64,000 nt of DNA, from contig JAPMXV010000029.1 of NCBI GenBank assembly GCA_026936335.1, positions 62,001 through 126,000 on the forward strand, given 5' to 3'. Made by a program: the position numbers and the translations under genes. This stretch comes from Mantamonas sphyraenae STR306. Taxonomy: Eukaryota > Protista > CRuMs. The notes below the pieces were generated by a model that saw only the letters and a list, made by a program, of their open reading frames with translations, made no database searches and was not told where the DNA came from. Below, piece by piece: positions 25,346-54,248 of the stretch. Positions within the stretch are counted from its first letter, which is position 1; each line of letters begins with the position of its first letter.

Positions 25346-28300
25346 TCATTGTGATGCAAGCAACCCTTGTGTCCCATGCGCTTCCTCAGTCTCGCTGTCG
25401 TTGTCATGCGTGTCCTCCTCGTCGCCACTGTTGGTCGCAGAGACAATGTCGTCGAGCTCGATGGCGTCGACTGTCGACTTGGTGGTGGAGGTCGTTGTCT
25501 TGGGAGCACGCTGCTTGACCTTGTACCGCATGATGAGAATCTGCACAAGGAGAAGACAGAGAAACATGGCCAGCAGGACGAGGACCGGAGAGAGGAGATC
25601 GGCGTCTGGCGAGATGAGGTCCATGCCTTTGACCTTATATGCGTACACAGCCGGGTGCTGTTCAAGGAAACACCAGAGGTTGCCAATCGACGTGTCGCCC
25701 AGTCGACACATGTACGAGCCGTGCTTGTCCATTTCTGCTCGAAGCATGCCCAAAAATGTGAATCTGATCGGGGACAAATTTGTGAAATGCATGAGCACGC
25801 CTTCGCGCACGCGTACGTAGAAGCCAGCCAGGAGGACTGTCGTTTGCAAGACTAGCGTGGCCACCACAATGCCAAGCGGGACTGCCTGCGTGAGCATGCC
25901 GCACACAATGCCGATCTGTGCGTACACAATCAGATTGAGCGACAACATCAGGCCATGGTACAGAAGCGTTCCTGCCTTCAGTCCAATGCCAGCCATTGGA
26001 AATGCCACAATGACAAAGACAAAGGGACCGGCAAACTCGCCAGCAGCGTACACCAGGTTCTCCGCCACGACCGAGGCCGCCGAAGAGCCTTTGCCGTTTC
26101 TGATCCTCGCCACGGTCGCCTGCGTCCTGACCGCTGCTCTGGCGCAGCAGGAAAAGGCTCGAGGGAACGTCGCCAGTGTCAGGGCGAAGAAGAGCAACGA
26201 GATGGTCTCATTCACTCCACGGGCCCACGGAGTTTCGCCGATCTGGAAGAAAATCGCTCCACAGACCAGGGCAAGGCCCACCACCTCGACCACCCTAGCA
26301 ATGTTCAACACTTCTGGGCGATAGCTCTTCCACTCTTGCTTAAACAGAGCTGCCACGAGAGTGAAAAAGTTGCTGCGACGTGTCGTCGCCGTTGACGATT
26401 CGTCTCCTCGAGCTGCGTCGGAGGCCTCTGCCGCCTCAACCATGTCCTTCTCCTCCTTTGACACACGAGCCTGCCAAACGGCAGCGTCCCACTCCTCCGT
26501 CTCTCCTGCCTGGTGTTCACCGAGATCACCGGCCCACCGGACTACGCCGTTGCCCTCGAGCCACACCAGCCTGGCGCCAGGAGCAACATCACGCACGTGT
26601 TGGGGCACGTCTCGCATGCTCACAATCACTGCCGCTTGCGTGCGCTCCGCGTAGTCCACAAGGGCGCGCATGAGCTGCTCCAGAGTGGCCGAGTCCTGAA
26701 AGGCATCGACGTCGTCCACAAGGAGCACGGGGCGTGCAAACAGCAGCTGCACACCCACACGCACCAGCTGCTGCTCTCCACGTGATAGTTGACCAAATGC
26801 AACCTGTTTCTTGTGCGCAAGCTCCAGTGCATCCAGCGTCGTGTCGATCAGCTCCTCCAGCATCCCCTTGCTGACCCCATTCTGGATGCGCTGCCGCGCC
26901 AACAGATTGCCATGGAAGCGCATGATGCCCGCCACACTCTCTTTCGGGTCAAAGACAGTCGTGTCGGTGCCCACATATGCGGCCGTGCTCCCGAGCTGCT
27001 TGCGATTCAGTTTCAAAATGTTTCGCCCGCACACGTGTACTCTGGAAGCAGTGGATATGCTCAGTCCTTGCATGTCCACCCCGCACACGTGTTTCAACAG
27101 AGCGGTCTTGCCGCATCCACAGCCGCCTGCGACGATGAGCACAGTGCCGCCTCGGAGCGAGCCCTGGCTGTTGACAACGGTGCCCTGGGCAGAATCGACA
27201 CGCAGGTGCCAGGAAAGCCCCACGCCATCTGCAGTGTTGACATTGGCGCGAGCGACGTCGGCACGCTCTTGCGCTGTGACGGGTTTGGCGACAACCGCCG
27301 TAGACGACTTGCCGGCCGCGCGTCGTCGTGCTACACACAGGCCGCACACGATGACGAGCAAAACGCCCACCACAATCACAGAAAACACCCAGCTGGGCAC
27401 GTCGCCTTGCTGATGGGCTGTGATGCCCAGCGGGTAGAGGGGCTTGATCTTTTCGCGGAGGAACGGGGCGTACGCAGGGTCGTGTCTGCAGAGCGCATCC
27501 GATGAGCACCGGAATCCACGCGGGAGGATTGGACCAAAGACCGCGTCTTCGTCTGCGAAACACTCACATGCAGGGAACGAAGGGAAGGGGAGTTGATCGG
27601 GATGCTCCGGTCCCGGTGGGTACGTCGGTGGCAAATCGGCTTGAGTGTACGTGGGAGGGTCGCCCACCTTGATGATAAACGCCATTCCGTCCTCTCTGTG
27701 GATGTCGATGTGACAGTGAGCGAAGAACACGCCAGGCTCAGTGGTGACGAGGGCGACCGCGACGGCTCCTCCCGCGGGGATCACAAAGGTATCGAGCAGA
27801 GCGGAAGTCCCCATCACTGCCTTTTTCTTCAACCGTGCCGTCGCCTCGGGTGTGGTTAGGTCCGTGTTCAGTCGACATCCCACGAGCGTGCAGTCGCGCT
27901 CGACATCGGGCACCGCGACTTCCAATACACGGAAGTGGATGCCGTGCAGGTGTATGTTGTGTGGGAAGGATGTACGCGAGCGAAACACAATAATGACCGT
28001 TGTGTTCTGGCGCAGCTCCAGAACTTGGGAGTGCGGGTGCAGATCGCGGTCGGCGGAGAAATTGGCGAGCAGCATCGGCTTGACTGGGTTCCGGTGCTGT
28101 GTAAACGGGCCGCCGTCGATGGCCACGAAGTGGCCGTAACTGGGTGATGGGTAAAAATCAAAGTCGACTCGCTTTTCTTGAAACCCGTGGGCAGTCGGAG
28201 ATTCGGGGGCATCCTCGAGATCAGGCCGCGTCTCCAGTGCTGTCGTACGCAGACACAGCGACGGGTCGAGGGAGATTTGCCAGCAGTTGAAGGTCTTTAG

Positions 28301-29579
28301 TTTCAGCGGGTCAGGACGCTCGCTGTGCTGTGGCTCGGGCACAGCGCTGTCCGGAACGGGCGTCCCTCCTGCAGTCACATACAGAATGCCCCGTACTTCG
28401 TGCAAATACCCCTGCTTCGGGTTCTCCAGTGTGCGCGCACGGATGTAAAATGCCGTGTCCGTCTGAACAGTGGGAACGGTGAACTCAAGATCAAACCGCT
28501 CGGCGGTGTGCAGTGACACTGCTTGCACCCGCAAAGGGATGTGATCGGAGCCGTCTGCAGCCACCACATCAAACTCGGGCACTCCATCGATCGTTACAGT
28601 GAAGGCGAATACTGCGCCCATGTTGATCAATCGCAAGCGGATCTTCTCGCCAGATTGCGCGCGCACAATGGCCCTCTCCTTCCCGTTCATCAGGCCTCCG
28701 TGCCATGCGACGGTGGCGACACGCATGCCATCCACGTCTTTGGCCACGGAGCCTTCGAGGCCGCCCACATTCTGCCAGAAAAGGAGACTGGCAGGGTAGG
28801 GGAAGTAGTCCTGCAACGTCAGGATCCGTTCGCCTGCACCCCACGCAAAGGCGTCCCCGCCGATGACAGAGGCTGCAGAGGTGTTTGCAGGATGGATGAT
28901 TAGTGGGCCGTGCACCAGATTCTGCCCGGTGGTCTCCAGGCCGCTGTGGGTCTGTGTGGGGCAGACAAAGAAGAGTGTGGCGCATTCGAGAGTCAGCGGC
29001 GGCAGAGGAGGCGGTTTGGCTGGGGCGGAGGCGGAGGAGATGCCTCATGTCGGCGCCTGCCAACTCTGCCATGGGCGAGCTCGGCACAGGCCCGTGCTCC
29101 GCTGGGGCGGAGGAGTTGCCTGGGCCTCTTGCTGCCATGGGCGAGCTGCCTTTGGGGCGCGCGCATGCGCCAGATCCGGGACGTGCCGCAAGTCCGCTGC
29201 AGATGTCACTCACATGGTACCAGTATGTGCCGGGCCGTTCGTGCAGCGTGTTGAACTTGTAATTCATACAGTGCCCAGGTGGGATACCCCATTGCGTCAG
29301 GCCAACCACACCGTCGAAAAGCAGGTTCCCGCGCATCTCCAGGCCGTGCCAATGCAGACTGAGAATTTCCTCCAGGTTGTTGCGCACGGTGACCTCCAGC
29401 GTGTCGCCTTTGCGCACGTGGATCGCCGGTGCCGTCATCCTGTTGTTTATCCAGGCCACTCGCAGCTTCTCCCCGCCGATGTGGTGCAGTCCGTTGGTTA
29501 CGTTAAACTCGTAACGCACCAGAGCACCATGCGTCGACACCACACAGACCAAGCACAGCAACAGAGTCCACTTGATCAT
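25346..29579 (-). CDS. Multicopper oxidase (laccase-like) - TM - ABCG half-transporter fusion, about 1323 aa; intron 28952-29213
   Basis: Signal MIKWTLLLCLVCVVSTHG; copper ligands SLHWHG, WYH|THS (completed by a cat|gtgagt...cacag| splice), PHNIHLHG, FAHCHIDIHREDGM; TM WVFSVIVVGVLLVIVCGLCV-ARRR; Walker A GGCGCGKT, LSRGEQQ, VLLVDD; ABC2-type membrane domain. No stop between oxidase and transporter. Confidence 0.9.
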
Positions 29580-29637
29580 TACCTTGCCCCCCCCGGCGCG
29601 GAAGAAAACCAAGCGCAGCCGCACAACCAACCCATTC

Positions 29638-30266
29638 ATGAGCGACACAGACGCAAGCGACATCCACATGGTGTCAGACGGCATGGCGGTGAACATCGTA
29701 CGTCCACCCCCTTCCTCCCCCCCTCCCTCCATCCCTAACCCCCCCCCCCCCACCCCCCCACACAGACCGCCAAGCACAACCGCAAGCTCCTGGGCGCACT
29801 TGCAGCCACGGCAGCCGTCGTCCTGGTGTTTCTGATCCTAATCATGGCTCAAGTGGGCGTGCTTGAAGCACGTTTGAAGCCCGCACCCTGCGCACGCATC
29901 ACAGGCGCCCAATTGGCCGACGGCGAGCGGGGTGTGTCGACTCATGTTCTGGATGTTGCTGCCGGCCTACCGGGCAGCAACATCACCGTCACGCTGTACA
30001 AGAAGGGCAGCAACGGCGCCTACGCCGTCGTGGGCTCCGGCGCAACGGGCAGCGACGGACGCGCCGACCTCATGGCGGCCAGCCAGATGAGTGCCAACAC
30101 GACGTACAAGCTGCACTTTGCGCTCGAGGCGTACTTTGCAGCCACCGGCACCCCGGTCGTGTTTCCAGAGGCGGAGGTGGTGTTTCGCGTCGGCGGCGCC
30201 GTCGAGCATTATCACATGCCGCTGCTGCTGAGCCCCGGCGGCTACACGACGTACAGGGGGTCTTGA
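29638..30266 (+). CDS. URAH: 5-hydroxyisourate hydrolase (transthyretin-like) with N-terminal signal-anchor; intron 29698-29765
   Basis: STHVLD, DGR, HYHMPLLLSPGGYTTYRGS* signature. An atc|gtacgt...ccctaac...cacag| intron gives MSDTDASDIHMVSDGMAVNI-TAKHNRKLLGALAATAAVVLVFLILIMAQVGVL in frame. Confidence 0.93.
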
Positions 30267-47853: not shown

Positions 47854-47888
47854 CGCGTTGCCTGCGCCCGTGGGTGCACTTGATCACC

Positions 47889-50800
47889 ATGCTCTACGTG
47901 AACGGCAAACGGCACGATCTGACGGGCACTGAGCCTACGACTACGCTGCTGGAGTACCTGCGCGCAAACCGGCTCGTGGGCACCAAGCTGGGGTGCGGCG
48001 AGGGAGGATGCGGAGCATGCACGGTCTTGCTGCAGACGCTGGTTGACGAGACGGTGCACACGCGGTCGTGCAACGCTTGCTTGACGCCTGTGTGGGCTGC
48101 AGAGGGCTGCGCCGTGATTACCATCGAAGGGCTGGGCAACACAAAGGAGATGCACCCGCTGCAGGAAGCGTTGGCAAAGGGCCACGGCAGCCAGTGTGGG
48201 TTCTGCAGCCCGGGGATCGTCATGAGCATGGCCGCCGCCCTGCGCAACAACCCCAAGGCCACCATGCTGGAACTGGAAGAGGCACTGGACGGTAGGTGGG
48301 GGTTCTGGGGAGATTTGTGCACATTGGGAGGTTGCTGACGTATTTTTTTTCTGGGTGCCCACAGGAAACCTGTGCCGCTGCACGGGCTACCGTCCCATTG
48401 TCGACGCGTACAAGCCCTTTGCGAGCGACTACTCGGGGGCGTGCTGCTCGTCGTCGTCGTCGTGCTCGTCGGGCGGATGCTGCGGCGGTGGCAAGGGAAA
48501 AGACGGCTGCGAGCAGCGGCTGAGCGAGCCGATCTTTCCGTCAAAGCTGCGGTCGTACGAGCGGGGCGAGCTGGAGGTGCGCTCACAAGCAGGAGACACG
48601 ACGTGGTACCGGCCTGCGTCGCTAGAGTCGCTGCTCGCGCTGCGTGCGGAGCACGGAGAGGCGCTGCGGGTGGTCATGGGAAACACAGAGCTCGGCATCG
48701 AGACTCGTTTGAAGGGCGCGCACGTCGCTGCGTATGCACACCCGGTACTGATCCCGGAGCTGCAGGAGCTGTCGCATGCCGACTCGACCTTGACCATTGG
48801 CAGCGCCACCACCCTCAGCACGCTCAAGTCGTACCTGGAGACGGAGCTGGGCGAGGATGCAGTGGCTGCGGCCATGGCCGACCAGCTGCGCTGGTTTGCA
48901 GGCAACCAGGTGCGCAACATGGCGAGCATCGGAGGCAACATCATCACGGCGTCGCCCATCAGTGATCTGATCCCTCTCCTCGTGGCCGCAGGCGCCACAT
49001 TCCGCCTCATCGACACCGACGGCAAAGTCGACGATGTGCCCTCGGGCGACTTTTTCCTGGCGTACCGCAAGACGGCCCTCAAGGCCAACCAGCTGCTGCA
49101 CAGCGTGCTTGTGCCGCTGACCGGACCCAACGACCACTTTGCCAACTTTAAGCAGTCGCGGCGCAAGGACGACGACATTGCGATCGTGAGCGCGGGCATG
49201 CGCGTCACAGTGAGCGACGGTGTCGTGACGGCGGCCACGCTGGCGTACGGCGGCATGGCAGCCACCGTCATGACGGCCAAGCTGGCAGGCGAGGCGTTGG
49301 TGGGCCAGCCCTGGACGATCGAGACGGTGCGTGCGGCCATGGAGCTGCTGGACACCGACATGCCGCTGGGAGAGAAAGCACCGGGAGGCATGGTGCCATA
49401 CCGTCGCCGCCTGGCGGCCGTCTTCTTGTACAAGTTCTTCCTGCGCACCCAAGGCCACCCAGAGATGGAGGAGCCGGAGCGGGCGCCCATGAAGGGAGAG
49501 CAGGTGTACTTTGTGGACGACGAAGAAGCTGGTCCCGTGCACAAACCGCTGGTCCATGCATCGGCCTATCAACAATGTACGGGACAGGCGTCGTACACGA
49601 ATGACACTGTTCCCACTGTGGGCGAACTGCACGCGTTTCCGGTGCAGTCAACGTGCCCGAGCGGCAGGATTCTGAGCGTCGACGTCGAGGAGGCGCTCGC
49701 CATGCCTGGCGTGGTGGAGTGGGTGTGCGCAGAGGATGTGCCCTTCAACGTGACGGGCGAGGTGGTGAAGGACGAAGAGGTGTTTGCCAGCGAGCGGGTG
49801 ACACATGTGGGCCAGTGGCTCGGTTTGGTCGTGGCCAAATCTCACAACGAGGCACGGGCGGCCGCAAGTCGAGTCAAGGTGCAGTACGACGCAGACGCGG
49901 AGCCCATCCTGACGATCCAGCAAGCGATTGAAGCCAAGAGTTTCATTCCATGCTCGGAGCGGACGCTGGCGTGTGGTGATGTTGATGCCGTGTTTGCACA
50001 TGCGGATCATGTACTGGAAGGACGCCTCGCCCAAGGACCGCAAGAACACTTCGCCCTAGAGCCCGTTGCAATCGTTGTTTCCCCAGGAGAGGACGGGGAA
50101 AAAATGGATGTGCAAGCGTCTGTGCAGGGTCCCATGATGGTGCAGAAAGCGGTTTCCGAGGCCCTCGGCATTTCCGCAAATCGCGTCAATGCTTTCGTTA
50201 AAAAATTAGGCGGGGGCTTCGGTGGAAAGGAAACCCGGCCTGCAGTGCTTGCCGCTGGTGTCGCTGTTGCTGCGCACAAGACGGGGACGGTGTGCAGGCT
50301 GGTGCTGGATCGAGACGTGGACATGAGCACAACCGGCAGACGCGGCGGCCTGCTGGCGGACTACAAGGTCGCCTTTGACTCCGACGGTACCATCACGGCC
50401 GTGGAGCTTGCTATGTATGTGGACGCCGGCTGCAGCACCGACCTGAGCGCGGCTGTTTTGGAACGCGCCATTCTGCACTGCACAAATGCGTCCGGCATCG
50501 AGTCCGTGAGAGCCAAAGGCGTGTGTGTCAGGACCGCAACGGCGTCAAACACGGCCTTTAGGGGCTTCGGAGGGCCAGAGGCGATGGTGATCTGGGAGCG
50601 CGTCGTCGAGCACGTGGCCGACAGGCTCGGTGTCCGGCCCGAAGTGATCCGCGAGGTCAACATGCTGCAGGTGGGCGCAAAGACGATCTATGGGCAGGAG
50701 GTGGAGAACAACGCAGTGCCTGCCATGTGGGAGTCGCTGAAGGAAAAAATGAGGTGGGAAGAGCTGCTGCAAGAGACGGCCGAGTTTAATGCGTCGCACG

Positions 50801-51795
50801 AGTACCTGAAGCGCGGCGTGTCCATGATGCAAACATGCTATGGGCTCGCTTACGGACATCTCGCACTCAATCAAGGGACTGCCGTGGTTTCAATTCAGCA
50901 GATTGACGGCACTGTGCTGGTGAGCTGTGGCGGCGTGGAAATGGGGCAGGGCTTGTTCAGCAAGGTCCTTGCCGTGGCGGCCCAGACCCTTGGCGTGGAC
51001 GTCGACATGGTGTTTATCAAAGAGACCTCGACGGCAACGATTTCAAACGCGTCTGCGACCGCAGCGAGCATGGGCAGCGACATCCACGGAGCCGCCGTCC
51101 AAGCCGCCTGCTTGAAGCTGATCGAGAGGCTGCAACCATACTTGGATGCGGCAAACGGCGACTGGAAAAAGGCAGTCAAGAGTGCGTACCTGGCGCGGGT
51201 GTCGCTCATGGAGCTAGCCTTCCACAAGGTACCGTTGTCGGGCTACTCCTGGCAGACGGGCGAGGGTACGCCGTACGTCTACCATACCACGGGTGTCGGT
51301 GCATCTGTGGTCGAAGTGGATGTGCTGACAGGCGAGTCCCGCATTCTGGACGTCAAGCTCATCATGGACGTGGGCACATCGATCAATCCGGCGATTGATG
51401 GCGGGCAAATCGAGGGAGCCTTTGCGCAAGGCGTTGGCCTGTATACATTGGAGGAAGTTGTGGCAGGCGCCCGAGATGAGCACAGTTGGTTGCCGCCTGG
51501 CAAGATTCACACTCTGGGCCCTGGCACATACAAGCTGCCCACGGTGGGCAGCATGCCTCGCGAGCTGGACGTCGAGCTCTGGCGCAGCGATGGCAATCCA
51601 AGAGCAGTGTATGGTTCCAAGGGTGTTGGTGAGCCCCCGCTGGCGCTTGCCATGGTGGTGTACTTGGCAATGAGGGACGTGGTACGTGAGGTGCGGAAGG
51701 AGAAGGGCTTGGATGCAGAGTTTGTTTTGGAAACTCCAGCGACGTGCGAGCGTGTGGCCATGGCCATGGTGGGAGAGGCAGAGATGAGTGTATGA
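47889..51795 (+). CDS. XDH: Xanthine dehydrogenase (2Fe-2S, FAD, molybdopterin domains), about 1277 aa; intron 48292-48364
   Basis: GTKLGCGEGGCGACTV, QCGFCSPG, DG|NLCRCTGY, FAGNQVRNMASIGGNI, RRKDDDIA, GGGFGGKET, LERAILH, TAFRGFGGP, GVEMGQGL, GQIEGAFAQG, SKGVGEPP. Confidence 0.95.
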
Positions 51796-52139
51796 ATGGA
51801 TGAGGGTTGATCCCTGGGTGCACTCTTTCTTGTGTGTCCTCCACTCCCCGCCCCCTTTCCACCCACCCCACCCCCCTTCCCCCCAACCCCCCCAACCCAC
51901 CAACCCACCATGACCTACCCAATCCCCCATCCACGACCCACTCCATTGACCCCCCTCCCCCCACCACACCCCCACCCCCCTCCCCCCCCCCTCTCTCTCT
52001 CAATCTTCCGGACGCTCCCCACACGTCTCGCCGTCTCCCACACACAACCCACAAAACCAACCACCCACCCCTCCTACCTCCCACCCAACCCAACCCACCT
52101 TCCCCAACCCACCTCTCCCCAACCCACCTCCCCCCCCAT

Positions 52140-54248
52140 GACCACGACAACCCCCCTCACACGCCCCTCCCTTCCGCGTCCTCTCCACCCCCTCCGACCT
52201 CCCCCGAGGCCCTTGTCCACCACATCCTCAACAACCTGCCCACGCCTCTCCCTCCGGCGAAAACCGCCTCCCTCACCGACGCCCTCCACGCCATCCTCCG
52301 CGACGCCTTTCACCCGTCCTCGCCCCTCTCTGCCGACGCCGCGCGCCACCAGGCCGTCGCGCGCATCCACACCGCCCTCACCGACGCCGCCTGCGACCCC
52401 GACCCTCTCGCCCCGTTTGCCGACCTCTACGACCGCCTCGTCCACCTCGACGCCTCCTCCCTCGCCGAGCCCGCCACAGACGCCTCCTCCATCCTTGTCA
52501 CGCCGGTCCCGCCTCCGCTGGCCACCCGCGTCCGCGCCTACCTCTTTAACCTCCTCGCCATTGCCCACTGGCTGCCTCGCTACACACGCGACGACCTGCA
52601 GAACGACCTCATTGCCGGCCTCACCATCGGCATCATGCTTGTGCCCCAGGGCATGGCCTACGCCCTCCTTGCAAACATGCCTCCCATCTACGGCCTCTAC
52701 TCGTCCTTTGTGCCCCTCATCATCTACGCGTGCTTTGGCACGTCGCGCCAGCTCAGTGTCGGCCCTGTGGCTCTGGTTTCGCTTCTCATTGCCGAGAGTG
52801 TGTCGCTGATCACCCCTCCGGGCACCGAGCTTTTTGTACAGCTGAGCATTGCGCTTGCGCTCCTTGTTGGACTCTTGCAGATCGCCATGGGGCTCCTTCG
52901 CCTGGGCATCCTGGTCTCCTTCCTCTCGCACCCGGTCATCAGCGGCTTTACCAGTGCCAGCGCGCTGATCATCGGCGCCAGCCAGCTGAAGCACCTGTTT
53001 GACGTCAAGCTGCCGACCACACACAACTTTTGGGAGCTGCTGTACGTCATTGCCGAGCGCCTGCCGCAGTCCAACTGGATTTCCATCCTGGTTGGCCTCG
53101 GCGGCGTCGCGATCCTGCTTGCGCTCAAGATGCACCCCAAGCTGAAGCGCGTCCCGGGCGGTCTGGTCGTCGTCATCATCGGCACCCTGGTCGGCTGGGG
53201 CATTGTGTCTTCGGGGGCCCGCCTGCGTGTGCTTGGGCCCATTCCGGCGGGCCTGCCGCTCCCGGCTGCGCCTGCCTTTACCTGGGAGCAGCTGGGCGAG
53301 CTGGTCCCTGCGGCCGTCACCATCAGCTTTGTCTCGTTCCTCGAGAGCATTGCTGTGGCCAAGCGCTTTGCCAGTGCCCACGACTACGACATCGACAGCA
53401 ACCAGGAGCTGGTTGGCCTGGGGGCGGCCAATCTCGTCGGCGCCTTTTTCCGCGCCTTTCCCACGACGGGCGGCTTCTCTCGCACGGCGGTCAACGACGC
53501 CGCCGGCGCCCGGACGCCCATGGCCCAGGTGTTTGGTGCGCTCGTCATCATGCTCACCCTCCTGTTTCTCACGCCCCTCTTTTACTACCTGCCCACCGCG
53601 GTCCTTGCCGCCATGGTCCTCGTTGCCGTGCGCAACCTGATCAACCTGCGTGAGCCGCGTGAGCTGTGGCACAGCAGCAAACAGGACTTTGCGATGCTGC
53701 TGCTGGCCTTTCTGGCCACGTTGTCCATCGGCGTCGAGCAGGGCATCCTGATTGCGATGGCTGTGTCCTTGCTGCTCGTCGTGCTGCGCGTGGCCCGCCC
53801 GCACAGCGCGGTGCTCGGGCGCCTCCCGGGCACGGTGGCGTACCGCAACGTGAAGCGGTACCCGCACGTCGAGACGTTTGCGCACATTGCCATCCTCCGC
53901 GTCGACGCACCCCTGTTTTTCTTCAACATGGACTGGTTCCAGGCCAAGGTCGATCGCATTGTGCGCCGCCTCCACCCGGAGCTGTACACGCTCATCATCG
54001 ATGCCAGCGCAATCAACGACGTCGACAGCGTCGCCCTGCACACCATCGAGCACCTTGCCGACGACTTTGCGGCCAGCAATCGCCGCATTGTCTTTGCCGC
54101 CCTCAAGGGCCCTGTGCGCGACAAGTTTGACCTCCACGGCATGGACTGCATCCCTGCCGATGCGCGATACCTCACTCTCCACGACGCCGTGGTGGCCGAG
54201 TGCCAGAAGCGCCCTGACGAGCACGAGCACAGCGACGAGGAGGTGTAG
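52140..54248 (+). CDS. SLC26/SulP anion transporter with STAS domain; 5' end uncertain in C-rich low-complexity sequence
   Basis: DLIAGLTIGIMLVPQGMAYALLA..PPIYGLYSSF..GTSRQLSVGP, NQELVGLG, GGFSRTAVN; STAS IIDASAINDVDSVA. Confidence 0.93.
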   Translation, partial: DHDNPPHTPLPSASSPPPPTSPEALVHHILNNLPTPLPPAKTASLTDALHAILRDAFHPSSPLSADAARHQAVARIHTALTDAACDPDPLAPFADLYDRLVHLDASSLAEPATDASSILVTPVPPPLATRVRAYLFNLLAIAHWLPRYTRDDLQNDLIAGLTIGIMLVPQGMAYALLANMPPIYGLYSSFVPLIIYACFGTSRQLSVGPVALVSLLIAESVSLITPPGTELFVQLSIALALLVGLLQIAMGLLRLGILVSFLSHPVISGFTSASALIIGASQLKHLFDVKLPTTHNFWELLYVIAERLPQSNWISILVGLGGVAILLALKMHPKLKRVPGGLVVVIIGTLVGWGIVSSGARLRVLGPIPAGLPLPAAPAFTWEQLGELVPAAVTISFVSFLESIAVAKRFASAHDYDIDSNQELVGLGAANLVGAFFRAFPTTGGFSRTAVNDAAGARTPMAQVFGALVIMLTLLFLTPLFYYLPTAVLAAMVLVAVRNLINLREPRELWHSSKQDFAMLLLAFLATLSIGVEQGILIAMAVSLLLVVLRVARPHSAVLGRLPGTVAYRNVKRYPHVETFAHIAILRVDAPLFFFNMDWFQAKVDRIVRRLHPELYTLIIDASAINDVDSVALHTIEHLADDFAASNRRIVFAALKGPVRDKFDLHGMDCIPADARYLTLHDAVVAECQKRPDEHEHSDEEV

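Follow-up and report, generated by a model that had tools for sequence, protein, structure and literature searches.

A multicopper oxidase joined to an ABCG-type membrane domain in Mantamonas sphyraenae and other eukaryotes, with a possible role in urate oxidation

A locus in which a multicopper oxidase and an ABCG half-transporter seem to be written in one gene lies on the minus strand of a 64,000-nucleotide stretch of the genome of Mantamonas sphyraenae STR306 (contig JAPMXV010000029.1, positions 62,001 to 126,000 of the forward strand; this whole stretch is called the window, and its G+C content is about 59-62%). Is it truly one gene, does the combination occur elsewhere, and what could an oxidase on the far side of a membrane do for the membrane domain that carries it? 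The union of these two well-studied families in one chain is an uncharacterised architecture, which recurs across eukaryotic supergroups. For Mantamonas we favour, with a probability of roughly 0.4, a conduit with a tethered oxidase whose substrate is urate.

Gene structure and domain order of the fusion

The features of the locus are collected in Table 1. Residue numbers follow exon 2 unless stated otherwise, and database searches and folding were carried out exon by exon. Two overlapping minus-strand open reading frames (ORFs) in different frames cover the gene (25346..28915 and 28569..29777). Their translations give the signal peptide and the first cupredoxin domain as far as ...PGTYWYH, then out-of-frame text, until the long ORF resumes at ...GPLIIHP. 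Removal of the intron restores both the frame and the HxH motif: exon 1 ends in ...YWYH, whose His is the first one in the second copper motif, and the spliced junction continues from YWYH into THSGLETTGQNLVHGPLIIH, in residue-for-residue agreement with the family consensus YWYHxHxxL-(9)-GxLIV. An earlier note on this DNA, made from the letters alone, had placed everything in one reading frame; a single gene it is, split over two exons, with a product of about 1323 residues.

The 1189-codon open frame and the five Pfam domains that follow one another in it are far beyond chance. Neither a stop nor a Met occurs from M423, at the type 1 (T1) copper site, to M627, past Walker A, so the ABC half is not translatable on its own with an intact P-loop. 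That two neighbouring genes or a chimeric assembly only give the look of one gene is hardly credible: no stop or start codon separates the halves, the first transmembrane helix (TM0) exactly fits the required topology, and unrelated organisms have the same fusion with its invariant linker, both in their transcriptomes and in ORFs without interruption. That the oxidase and ABC halves belong to a single gene is, judged from the sequence and its homologues, nearly certain, and we hold the architecture as described here with high confidence.

Table 1. Coordinates of the fusion gene, its parts and its neighbours in the window
Feature	Position	Strand	Remarks
Whole gene	25346-29579	(-)	two exons; span 4234 nt, not divisible by 3
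Exon 1	29214..29579	(-)	122 aa; signal peptide (about residues 1-18 of exon 1), cupredoxin domain 1 with HWHG
Intron	28952..29213	(-)	262 nt, GTGAGT...CACAG (GT-AG), polypyrimidine tract; inside second copper motif
Exon 2	25346..28951	(-)	1201 aa and stop; oxidase remainder, stalk, TM0, nucleotide-binding domain, membrane domain, acidic tail; one frame
Oxidase domains 2-3	27632..28951	(-)	residues 1-440
Cys-rich juxtamembrane stalk	27389..27631	(-)	residues 441-521
TM0 helix	27332..27388	(-)	residues 522-540; Kyte-Doolittle 3.17; helix 21-52 in model; followed by ARRR, cytosolic side
Nucleotide-binding domain	26552..27199	(-)	residues about 585-800
ABCG-type membrane domain	25517..26359	(-)	residues 865-1145, six helices; external loop with conserved C1082, C1094
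Acidic C-terminal cytosolic tail	25349..25516	(-)	residues 1146-1201
Stop codon	25346-25348	(-)	
Divergent gap	29580..29637	(.)	58 nt between start codons; putative shared promoter
5-Hydroxyisourate (HIU) hydrolase gene	29638..30266	(+)	exon 1 29638-29697; 68-nt intron 29698-29765; exon 2 29766-30266
Xanthine dehydrogenase	47874..51795	(+)	2Fe-2S, FAD, molybdenum-cofactor domains; urate-forming; 18 kb from fusion

From the N to the C terminus, the Pfam matches are Cu-oxidase_3 (E = 4e-26), Cu-oxidase (4e-12), Cu-oxidase_2 (9e-21), ABC_tran (4e-10) and ABC2_membrane (2e-13), and each of the three cupredoxin domains lies above its Pfam cut-off. The protein opens with the signal peptide MIKWTLLLCLVCVVSTHG. 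All four copper motifs are complete, namely HWHG, WYH/TH split by the intron, HNIHLHG, and HCHIDIHREDGM with an axial Met; the ligands in exon 2 are H2, H331/H334/H336, H412-C413-H414, H418 and the axial M423. Judged by these ligands, the oxidase half appears to be a catalytically complete three-domain multicopper oxidase. It contains four N-glycosylation sequons, those of exon 2 at residues 23, 297 and 316. The closest solved structures are fungal laccases (E 8.5e-18); the 49 solved relatives found at E<=0.001 did not include Fet3. The oxidase scores under every NCBIfam equivalog cut-off.

The ABC half shows the reverse domain order that is typical of ABCG proteins, with ABC_tran at residues 596-747 ahead of ABC2_membrane at 865-1071. 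By sequence, the solved structures that it matches are those of ABCG1, ABCG5 and ABCG8, over both the nucleotide-binding domain (NBD) and the transmembrane domain (TMD); among the NCBIfam models, the pigment precursor permease family scores best (92.7 bits against a cut-off of 736). An AlphaFold2 model of TM0-NBD-TMD reached a mean predicted local distance difference test (pLDDT) score of 80. With this model, the top 50 Foldseek matches were all ABCG or PDR proteins, over about 600 columns and with E-values down to 2e-20; their global TM-scores were only 0.34-0.46 because the relative orientation of the domains differs. A search of the ESM Atlas gave ordinary ABCG clusters only. At rank 10 among these stands a 64-member Ascomycota cluster of ABCG proteins of about 1297 aa, auto-named 'FAD-dependent urate hydroxylase'; this name may be an annotation artefact, or the cluster may connect a urate-oxidising enzyme with an ABCG transporter a second time.

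Taken together, these parts give a coherent predicted topology: a seven-helix membrane protein in which the oxidase and stalk would be luminal or extracellular, TM0 would be oriented by the positive-inside RRR, and the NBD would be cytosolic. The signal peptide, copper motifs, axial Met, TM helix with RRR and NBD-TMD order listed in the earlier note were all recovered on the minus strand by Pfam and motif searches.

Modelled as a homodimer, the membrane domain scored 0.62 against 0.00 for the best control, and its interface lies in the regions of TM1-2 and TM5. Of 30 solved homodimers 21 reached the same mark, and of 23 solved monomers none did. At least 86% of the contacts coincided between runs of the dimer model, with pLDDT of at least 73. 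Since solved ABCG dimers exist, the model may reflect memory of those structures and shows likeness only.

The state of the ATPase is less regular. Walker A is intact (GGCGCGKT, G609-T616) and the Walker B Asp, D746, is kept, with T662 in place of the Q-loop Gln, D747 in place of the catalytic Glu, R780 in place of the H-loop His, and LSRGE as the signature. ATP-driven pumping by this protein is accordingly doubtful. The earlier note had proposed a luminal or extracellular oxidase coupled to transport of its substrate or product; the topology is in keeping with that proposal, and it is active, ATP-driven coupling that the three replaced residues, and the loss of the NBD or its motifs in the nearest relatives, call into question.

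The fusion family across eukaryotes

HMMER, run exhaustively over 1.84 billion representatives, returned 60 matches below 1e-30; a word-indexed search with the whole exon-2 protein gave no match. We take as family members those proteins that carry the oxidase, the CxC...CSxxxLC stalk, TM0 and an ABC2-type TMD in one chain, as the Mantamonas protein does. The earlier note knew of no laccase-ABCG fusion. Unreviewed entries do exist, among them UniRef100_A0A7S4CDM0 from Eutreptiella gymnastica (P0051/P0161), which bears an NBD, and a complete transcript ORF of Salpingoeca infusionum (P0012, 1329 aa), which aligns in one stretch over residues 3-1147. Further NBD-bearing fusions are P0024, P0010 (NCBI GCA_020064125.1) and P0029. 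An oxidase and membrane domain with little or no NBD were found in Skeletonema japonicum (P0156) and Octactis speculum (P0296, UniRef100_A0A7S2BRS6). Thus, choanoflagellate and euglenid transcripts have the same architecture as Mantamonas, and the diatom and dictyochophyte members are NBD-poor. Another member, P0002, is an unbroken single ORF on three independent eukaryotic contigs, and a metagenome scan added about 20 marine contigs with matches across both halves.

The family is present in Opisthokonta, Stramenopila, Discoba and CRuMs, and the fusion is unremarked in the databases. Literature searches found no paper that describes an oxidase-ABCG architecture.

Several residues hold the family together. 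Stalk cysteines C462, C464, C482 and C488 (CxC...CSxxxLC) are invariant in 23 of 23 aligned members, and C223, C233, C354 and C359 are likewise common to all 23; this shared set of cysteines argues for a single origin of the fusion. Within the membrane domain, Q1036, G1014 and G1043 are conserved across supergroups. Two very long proteins, P0036 (6257 aa) and P0071 (5038 aa), gave 13 and 9 separate matches to the region of oxidase domain 3 and are apparently cupredoxin arrays.

The NBD varies far more. Its motifs are canonical in P0010, P0057, P0029, P0024 and P0076, degenerate in Mantamonas and Salpingoeca, and lack Walker A in the Eutreptiella clade. P0001-P0004 and P0153 have no NBD at all, and the spacing between TM0 and TMD is there only about 40 residues. 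A quick maximum-likelihood tree placed Mantamonas in a clade of 12 with support of 100, the other 11 members of which are without the NBD or its motifs; several of these 11 retain copper ligands. Members with a canonical NBD stand at the base of different clades, which suggests that the NBD was lost repeatedly. P0001-P0004, which have no NBD, retain intact copper ligands, as does Mantamonas, and in the Mantamonas clade it is the oxidase that appears to have been kept and not the ATPase. In some members the HCH of the T1/T3 copper motif is replaced, by QGQ in Skeletonema (P0005/P0156), SGQ in P0011/P0158, HSQ in Salpingoeca (P0012) and NSH in P0024. The members with HSQ, QGQ, SGQ or NSH look like pseudo-oxidases on an ABC membrane domain.

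Genomic neighbourhood and candidate function

The fusion gene is paired divergently with a gene for HIU hydrolase. The domain of the latter passes the TIGR02962 equivalog model (106.6 bits against a cut-off of 87.45) and is the sole transthyretin-family match genome-wide. It is preceded by KHNRK and a TM anchor (type II), and the protein ends in ...TYRGS; relatives found elsewhere are short and anchor-less (106-120 aa). By the positive-inside rule, the catalytic domain would lie on the same side of the membrane as the oxidase. Other genes of the window include the xanthine dehydrogenase, an adjacent major facilitator superfamily (MFS) transporter, a 2-oxoglutarate dioxygenase and a SulP/STAS permease. 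The ORF of this permease (51807-54248, plus strand) starts 12 nt past the xanthine dehydrogenase stop and has a weak MFS_MOT1 match; it may be a molybdate or sulfate carrier beside a molybdenum-cofactor enzyme. The introns of the hydrolase gene (29698-29765) and of the fusion (28952-29213) both end in ...CCCCACACAG following C-rich tracts, and the former consists almost entirely of C and T, with a run of about 25 C.

An ER-type HSP90 of this genome shares 76% identity with that of Mantamonas plastica and no more than 56% with any other sequence. Profile searches covered the whole genome (25,061,354 bases, 78 contigs) and found only two multicopper oxidases. In the one besides the fusion (L092:4096-5499, minus strand, contig 15), about 200 unassigned residues precede two cupredoxin Pfam domains; it adjoins two ankyrin-repeat genes and is not a fusion. 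No uricase was found genome-wide with Pfam or TIGRFAM models, and the same holds genome-wide for 2-oxo-4-hydroxy-4-carboxy-5-ureidoimidazoline (OHCU) decarboxylase, for allantoinase, and for a hydroxylase of HpxO grade, for which the highest score was 43 bits (cut-off 500), from a gene resembling VioC and kynurenine monooxygenase (KMO). FAD monooxygenases considered as HpxO candidates were rejected, being COQ6, this VioC/KMO-like gene and generic enzymes. There is no PF03239 (FTR1) match in the genome.

Accommodating both the protein and its neighbours, we propose the following. The membrane domain would dimerise in the ABCG fashion and form a conduit, through which a small substrate would leave the cytosol. 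The tethered oxidase would oxidise it at once, reducing O2 to water, and the flux would be maintained by this far-side oxidation instead of ATP hydrolysis. An oxidation-pulled conduit is preferred to an ATP pump because the clade seems to keep the oxidase and not the ATPase. Urate, the suggested substrate in Mantamonas, would be supplied by the nearby xanthine dehydrogenase, and the anchored HIU hydrolase, on the side of the membrane where the oxidase lies, would hydrolyse the resulting 5-hydroxyisourate. The fusion would in this way do the work of the missing uricase, in a pathway that leads to allantoin for excretion. Where urate is made and HIU hydrolase is retained, a urate oxidase is needed as well, and the fusion is the only oxidase in the cluster; that OHCU decarboxylase and allantoinase were not found fits an excretory end-point. 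ABCG2 is a urate exporter. Urate is also reported to act on multicopper oxidase cathodes in a passage of PMC2864295 that cites Shin et al. 2007. Coupling between conduit and oxidase seems to us a slightly better than even bet, and urate as the substrate is put forward tentatively. The full scheme, in which a copper oxidase has replaced uricase, oxidation and not ATP drives urate export, and 5-hydroxyisourate is passed to the anchored hydrolase without formation of H2O2, is more speculative.

A number of points weigh against this proposal. To our knowledge, no natural multicopper oxidase serves as a physiological urate oxidase, and literature searches on urate catabolism by copper oxidases returned nothing relevant. 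Homologues of the HIU hydrolase, xanthine dehydrogenase, MFS and dioxygenase genes are present in the flanks of 0 of 87 related loci, and the urate link comes from the Mantamonas genome alone. Genes there are densely packed, and short divergent gaps may therefore be frequent. Urate or allantoin could instead be carried by the product of the adjacent MFS gene. Six-frame searches may miss intron-rich genes, and a urate oxidase of the PuuD or HpyO type is a possibility. Copper ligands are lost in several family members, so catalysis is not constant across the family. With Walker A and the Walker B Asp preserved, the protein may still bind ATP, or may form a heterodimer with the product of one of the genome's other ABCG genes, of which there are roughly ten. 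The suggestion of urate in the earlier note thus gains from the divergent HIU hydrolase, the nearby xanthine dehydrogenase and the lack of a detected uricase, and loses from the want of synteny among relatives.

Other functions have to be set beside the urate conduit. The ABCG part might export phenolic or aminophenol precursors (monolignol-like, melanin or ommochrome precursors such as 3-hydroxykynurenine), which the laccase-type oxidase would couple or polymerise into a coat, cyst wall or pigment granule. The laccase-like structure of the oxidase speaks for this, as do the proximity of the ABC part to the pigment precursor permeases, which include White and Scarlet, and the VioC/KMO-like gene in the genome; laccases are known to polymerise monolignols and wall precursors exported by plant ABCGs, and the idea applies to the whole family without a cluster specific to Mantamonas. 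It leaves the head-to-head HIU hydrolase, the nearby xanthine dehydrogenase and the missing uricase unexplained, however, and neither in Mantamonas nor in relatives were genes of a phenolic pathway seen next to the fusion. The axial Met moreover suggests a low-potential T1 site, which would be worse suited to hard phenols. We consider polymerisation of this kind unlikely. Surface oxidation of Fe(II), Mn(II) or Cu(I), with the metal handed to the membrane domain or simply detoxified, would make the protein a metal oxidase and permease in one chain. Its layout of signal peptide, three domains, TM helix and cytosolic tail is indeed Fet3-like, the family is mostly found in marine protists, including a diatom and a dictyochophyte, groups in which copper-dependent iron uptake is known, and without FTR1 the genome offers no conventional partner. 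ABCG cavities, however, are hydrophobic and carry lipids and organic anions rather than metal ions, laccases were among the solved relatives of the oxidase and Fet3 was not, and the cluster points to purine catabolism rather than metal handling, which makes a metal permease less likely still.

It could also be that nothing is transported, and that the ABC half of a decayed transporter is retained only as an anchor and dimerisation scaffold for an oxidase that uses an external substrate. The NBD is degenerate in Mantamonas and repeatedly lost in the family, the invariant residues are structural cysteines and a few membrane-domain glycines, and the dimer model of the membrane domain passes its controls. 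Yet one TM helix suffices for anchoring, as in Fet3 and hephaestin. A six-helix domain with Q1036, G1014 and G1043 kept from one supergroup to another argues for a function in the membrane, and the NBD fold of the Mantamonas protein is still confidently predicted. A mere anchor is for these reasons quite unlikely in our view.

Relation to known systems

Whatever its substrate, the fusion is a natural experiment in which transport may be coupled to chemistry on the far side of the membrane, and in which an ABC membrane domain persists while the ATPase decays or vanishes. Should the urate conduit with its tethered oxidase prove correct, it would explain how urate is handled with xanthine dehydrogenase and HIU hydrolase and without uricase. 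It would also provide a copper-dependent, peroxide-free route of purine catabolism outside peroxisomes and a new type of enzyme for urate sensing or lowering. The known kinds of urate oxidase would then be joined by a fourth that is unrelated to them, and the protein would be the first ABC-fold transporter in which an oxidase pulls the substrate.

The oxidase half shares its three cupredoxin domains and four copper motifs with laccases, bilirubin oxidase and CotA, and the axial Met with the latter two; unlike all of these, it is membrane-tethered according to its predicted topology and has family-specific disulfide cysteines. The same proposed product, 5-hydroxyisourate, which feeds HIU hydrolase, is formed by the known urate oxidases, that is, the cofactor-less uricase, the flavoenzymes HpxO and HpyO, and PuuD, and the fusion gene lies beside an HIU hydrolase gene and near xanthine dehydrogenase. 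It has no homology to any of these enzymes, and the predicted copper oxidase would yield water instead of H2O2 and would act outside the cytosol rather than in peroxisomes.

The ABC half resembles ABCG2, ABCG1, ABCG5/G8 and White/Scarlet (Transporter Classification 3.A.1.204) in the order of NBD and TMD, the six-helix ABC2_membrane domain and the cysteines of the external loop; the modelled dimer of its membrane domain is of the TM2/TM5 type, which may merely echo the solved ABCG structures. Compared with these half-transporters, the fusion adds about 660 N-terminal residues (signal peptide, oxidase, stalk and TM0), and its Q-loop Gln, catalytic Glu and H-loop His are replaced. In ABCGs of the yeast Adp1 type, too, the NBD is preceded at the N terminus by an additional TM helix and a domain outside the cytosol; these proteins match ABC2_membrane_7 (PF19055) and are without an oxidase, whereas the fusion has no PF19055 match and a Cys-rich stalk of its own. 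Mantamonas itself has two Adp1-like ABCG genes with ABC2_membrane_7, encoding 1350-1370 aa (L090:4624-8730, minus strand, and L091:2404-6447, plus strand, on genome contigs 13 and 23); both have canonical-scoring NBDs and a 700-800-residue N-terminal extension without a Pfam match.

A functional parallel is provided by Fet3p/Ftr1p and hephaestin, in which a type I multicopper oxidase, catalytic on the outside and anchored by one TM helix, is likewise coupled to a transport protein. Here both partners are part of one polypeptide, the transport partner has an ABCG fold in place of the FTR1 permease, and the oxidase has an axial Met. The direction of transport would probably be outward, making the fusion a mirror image of the Fet3p/Ftr1p pair.

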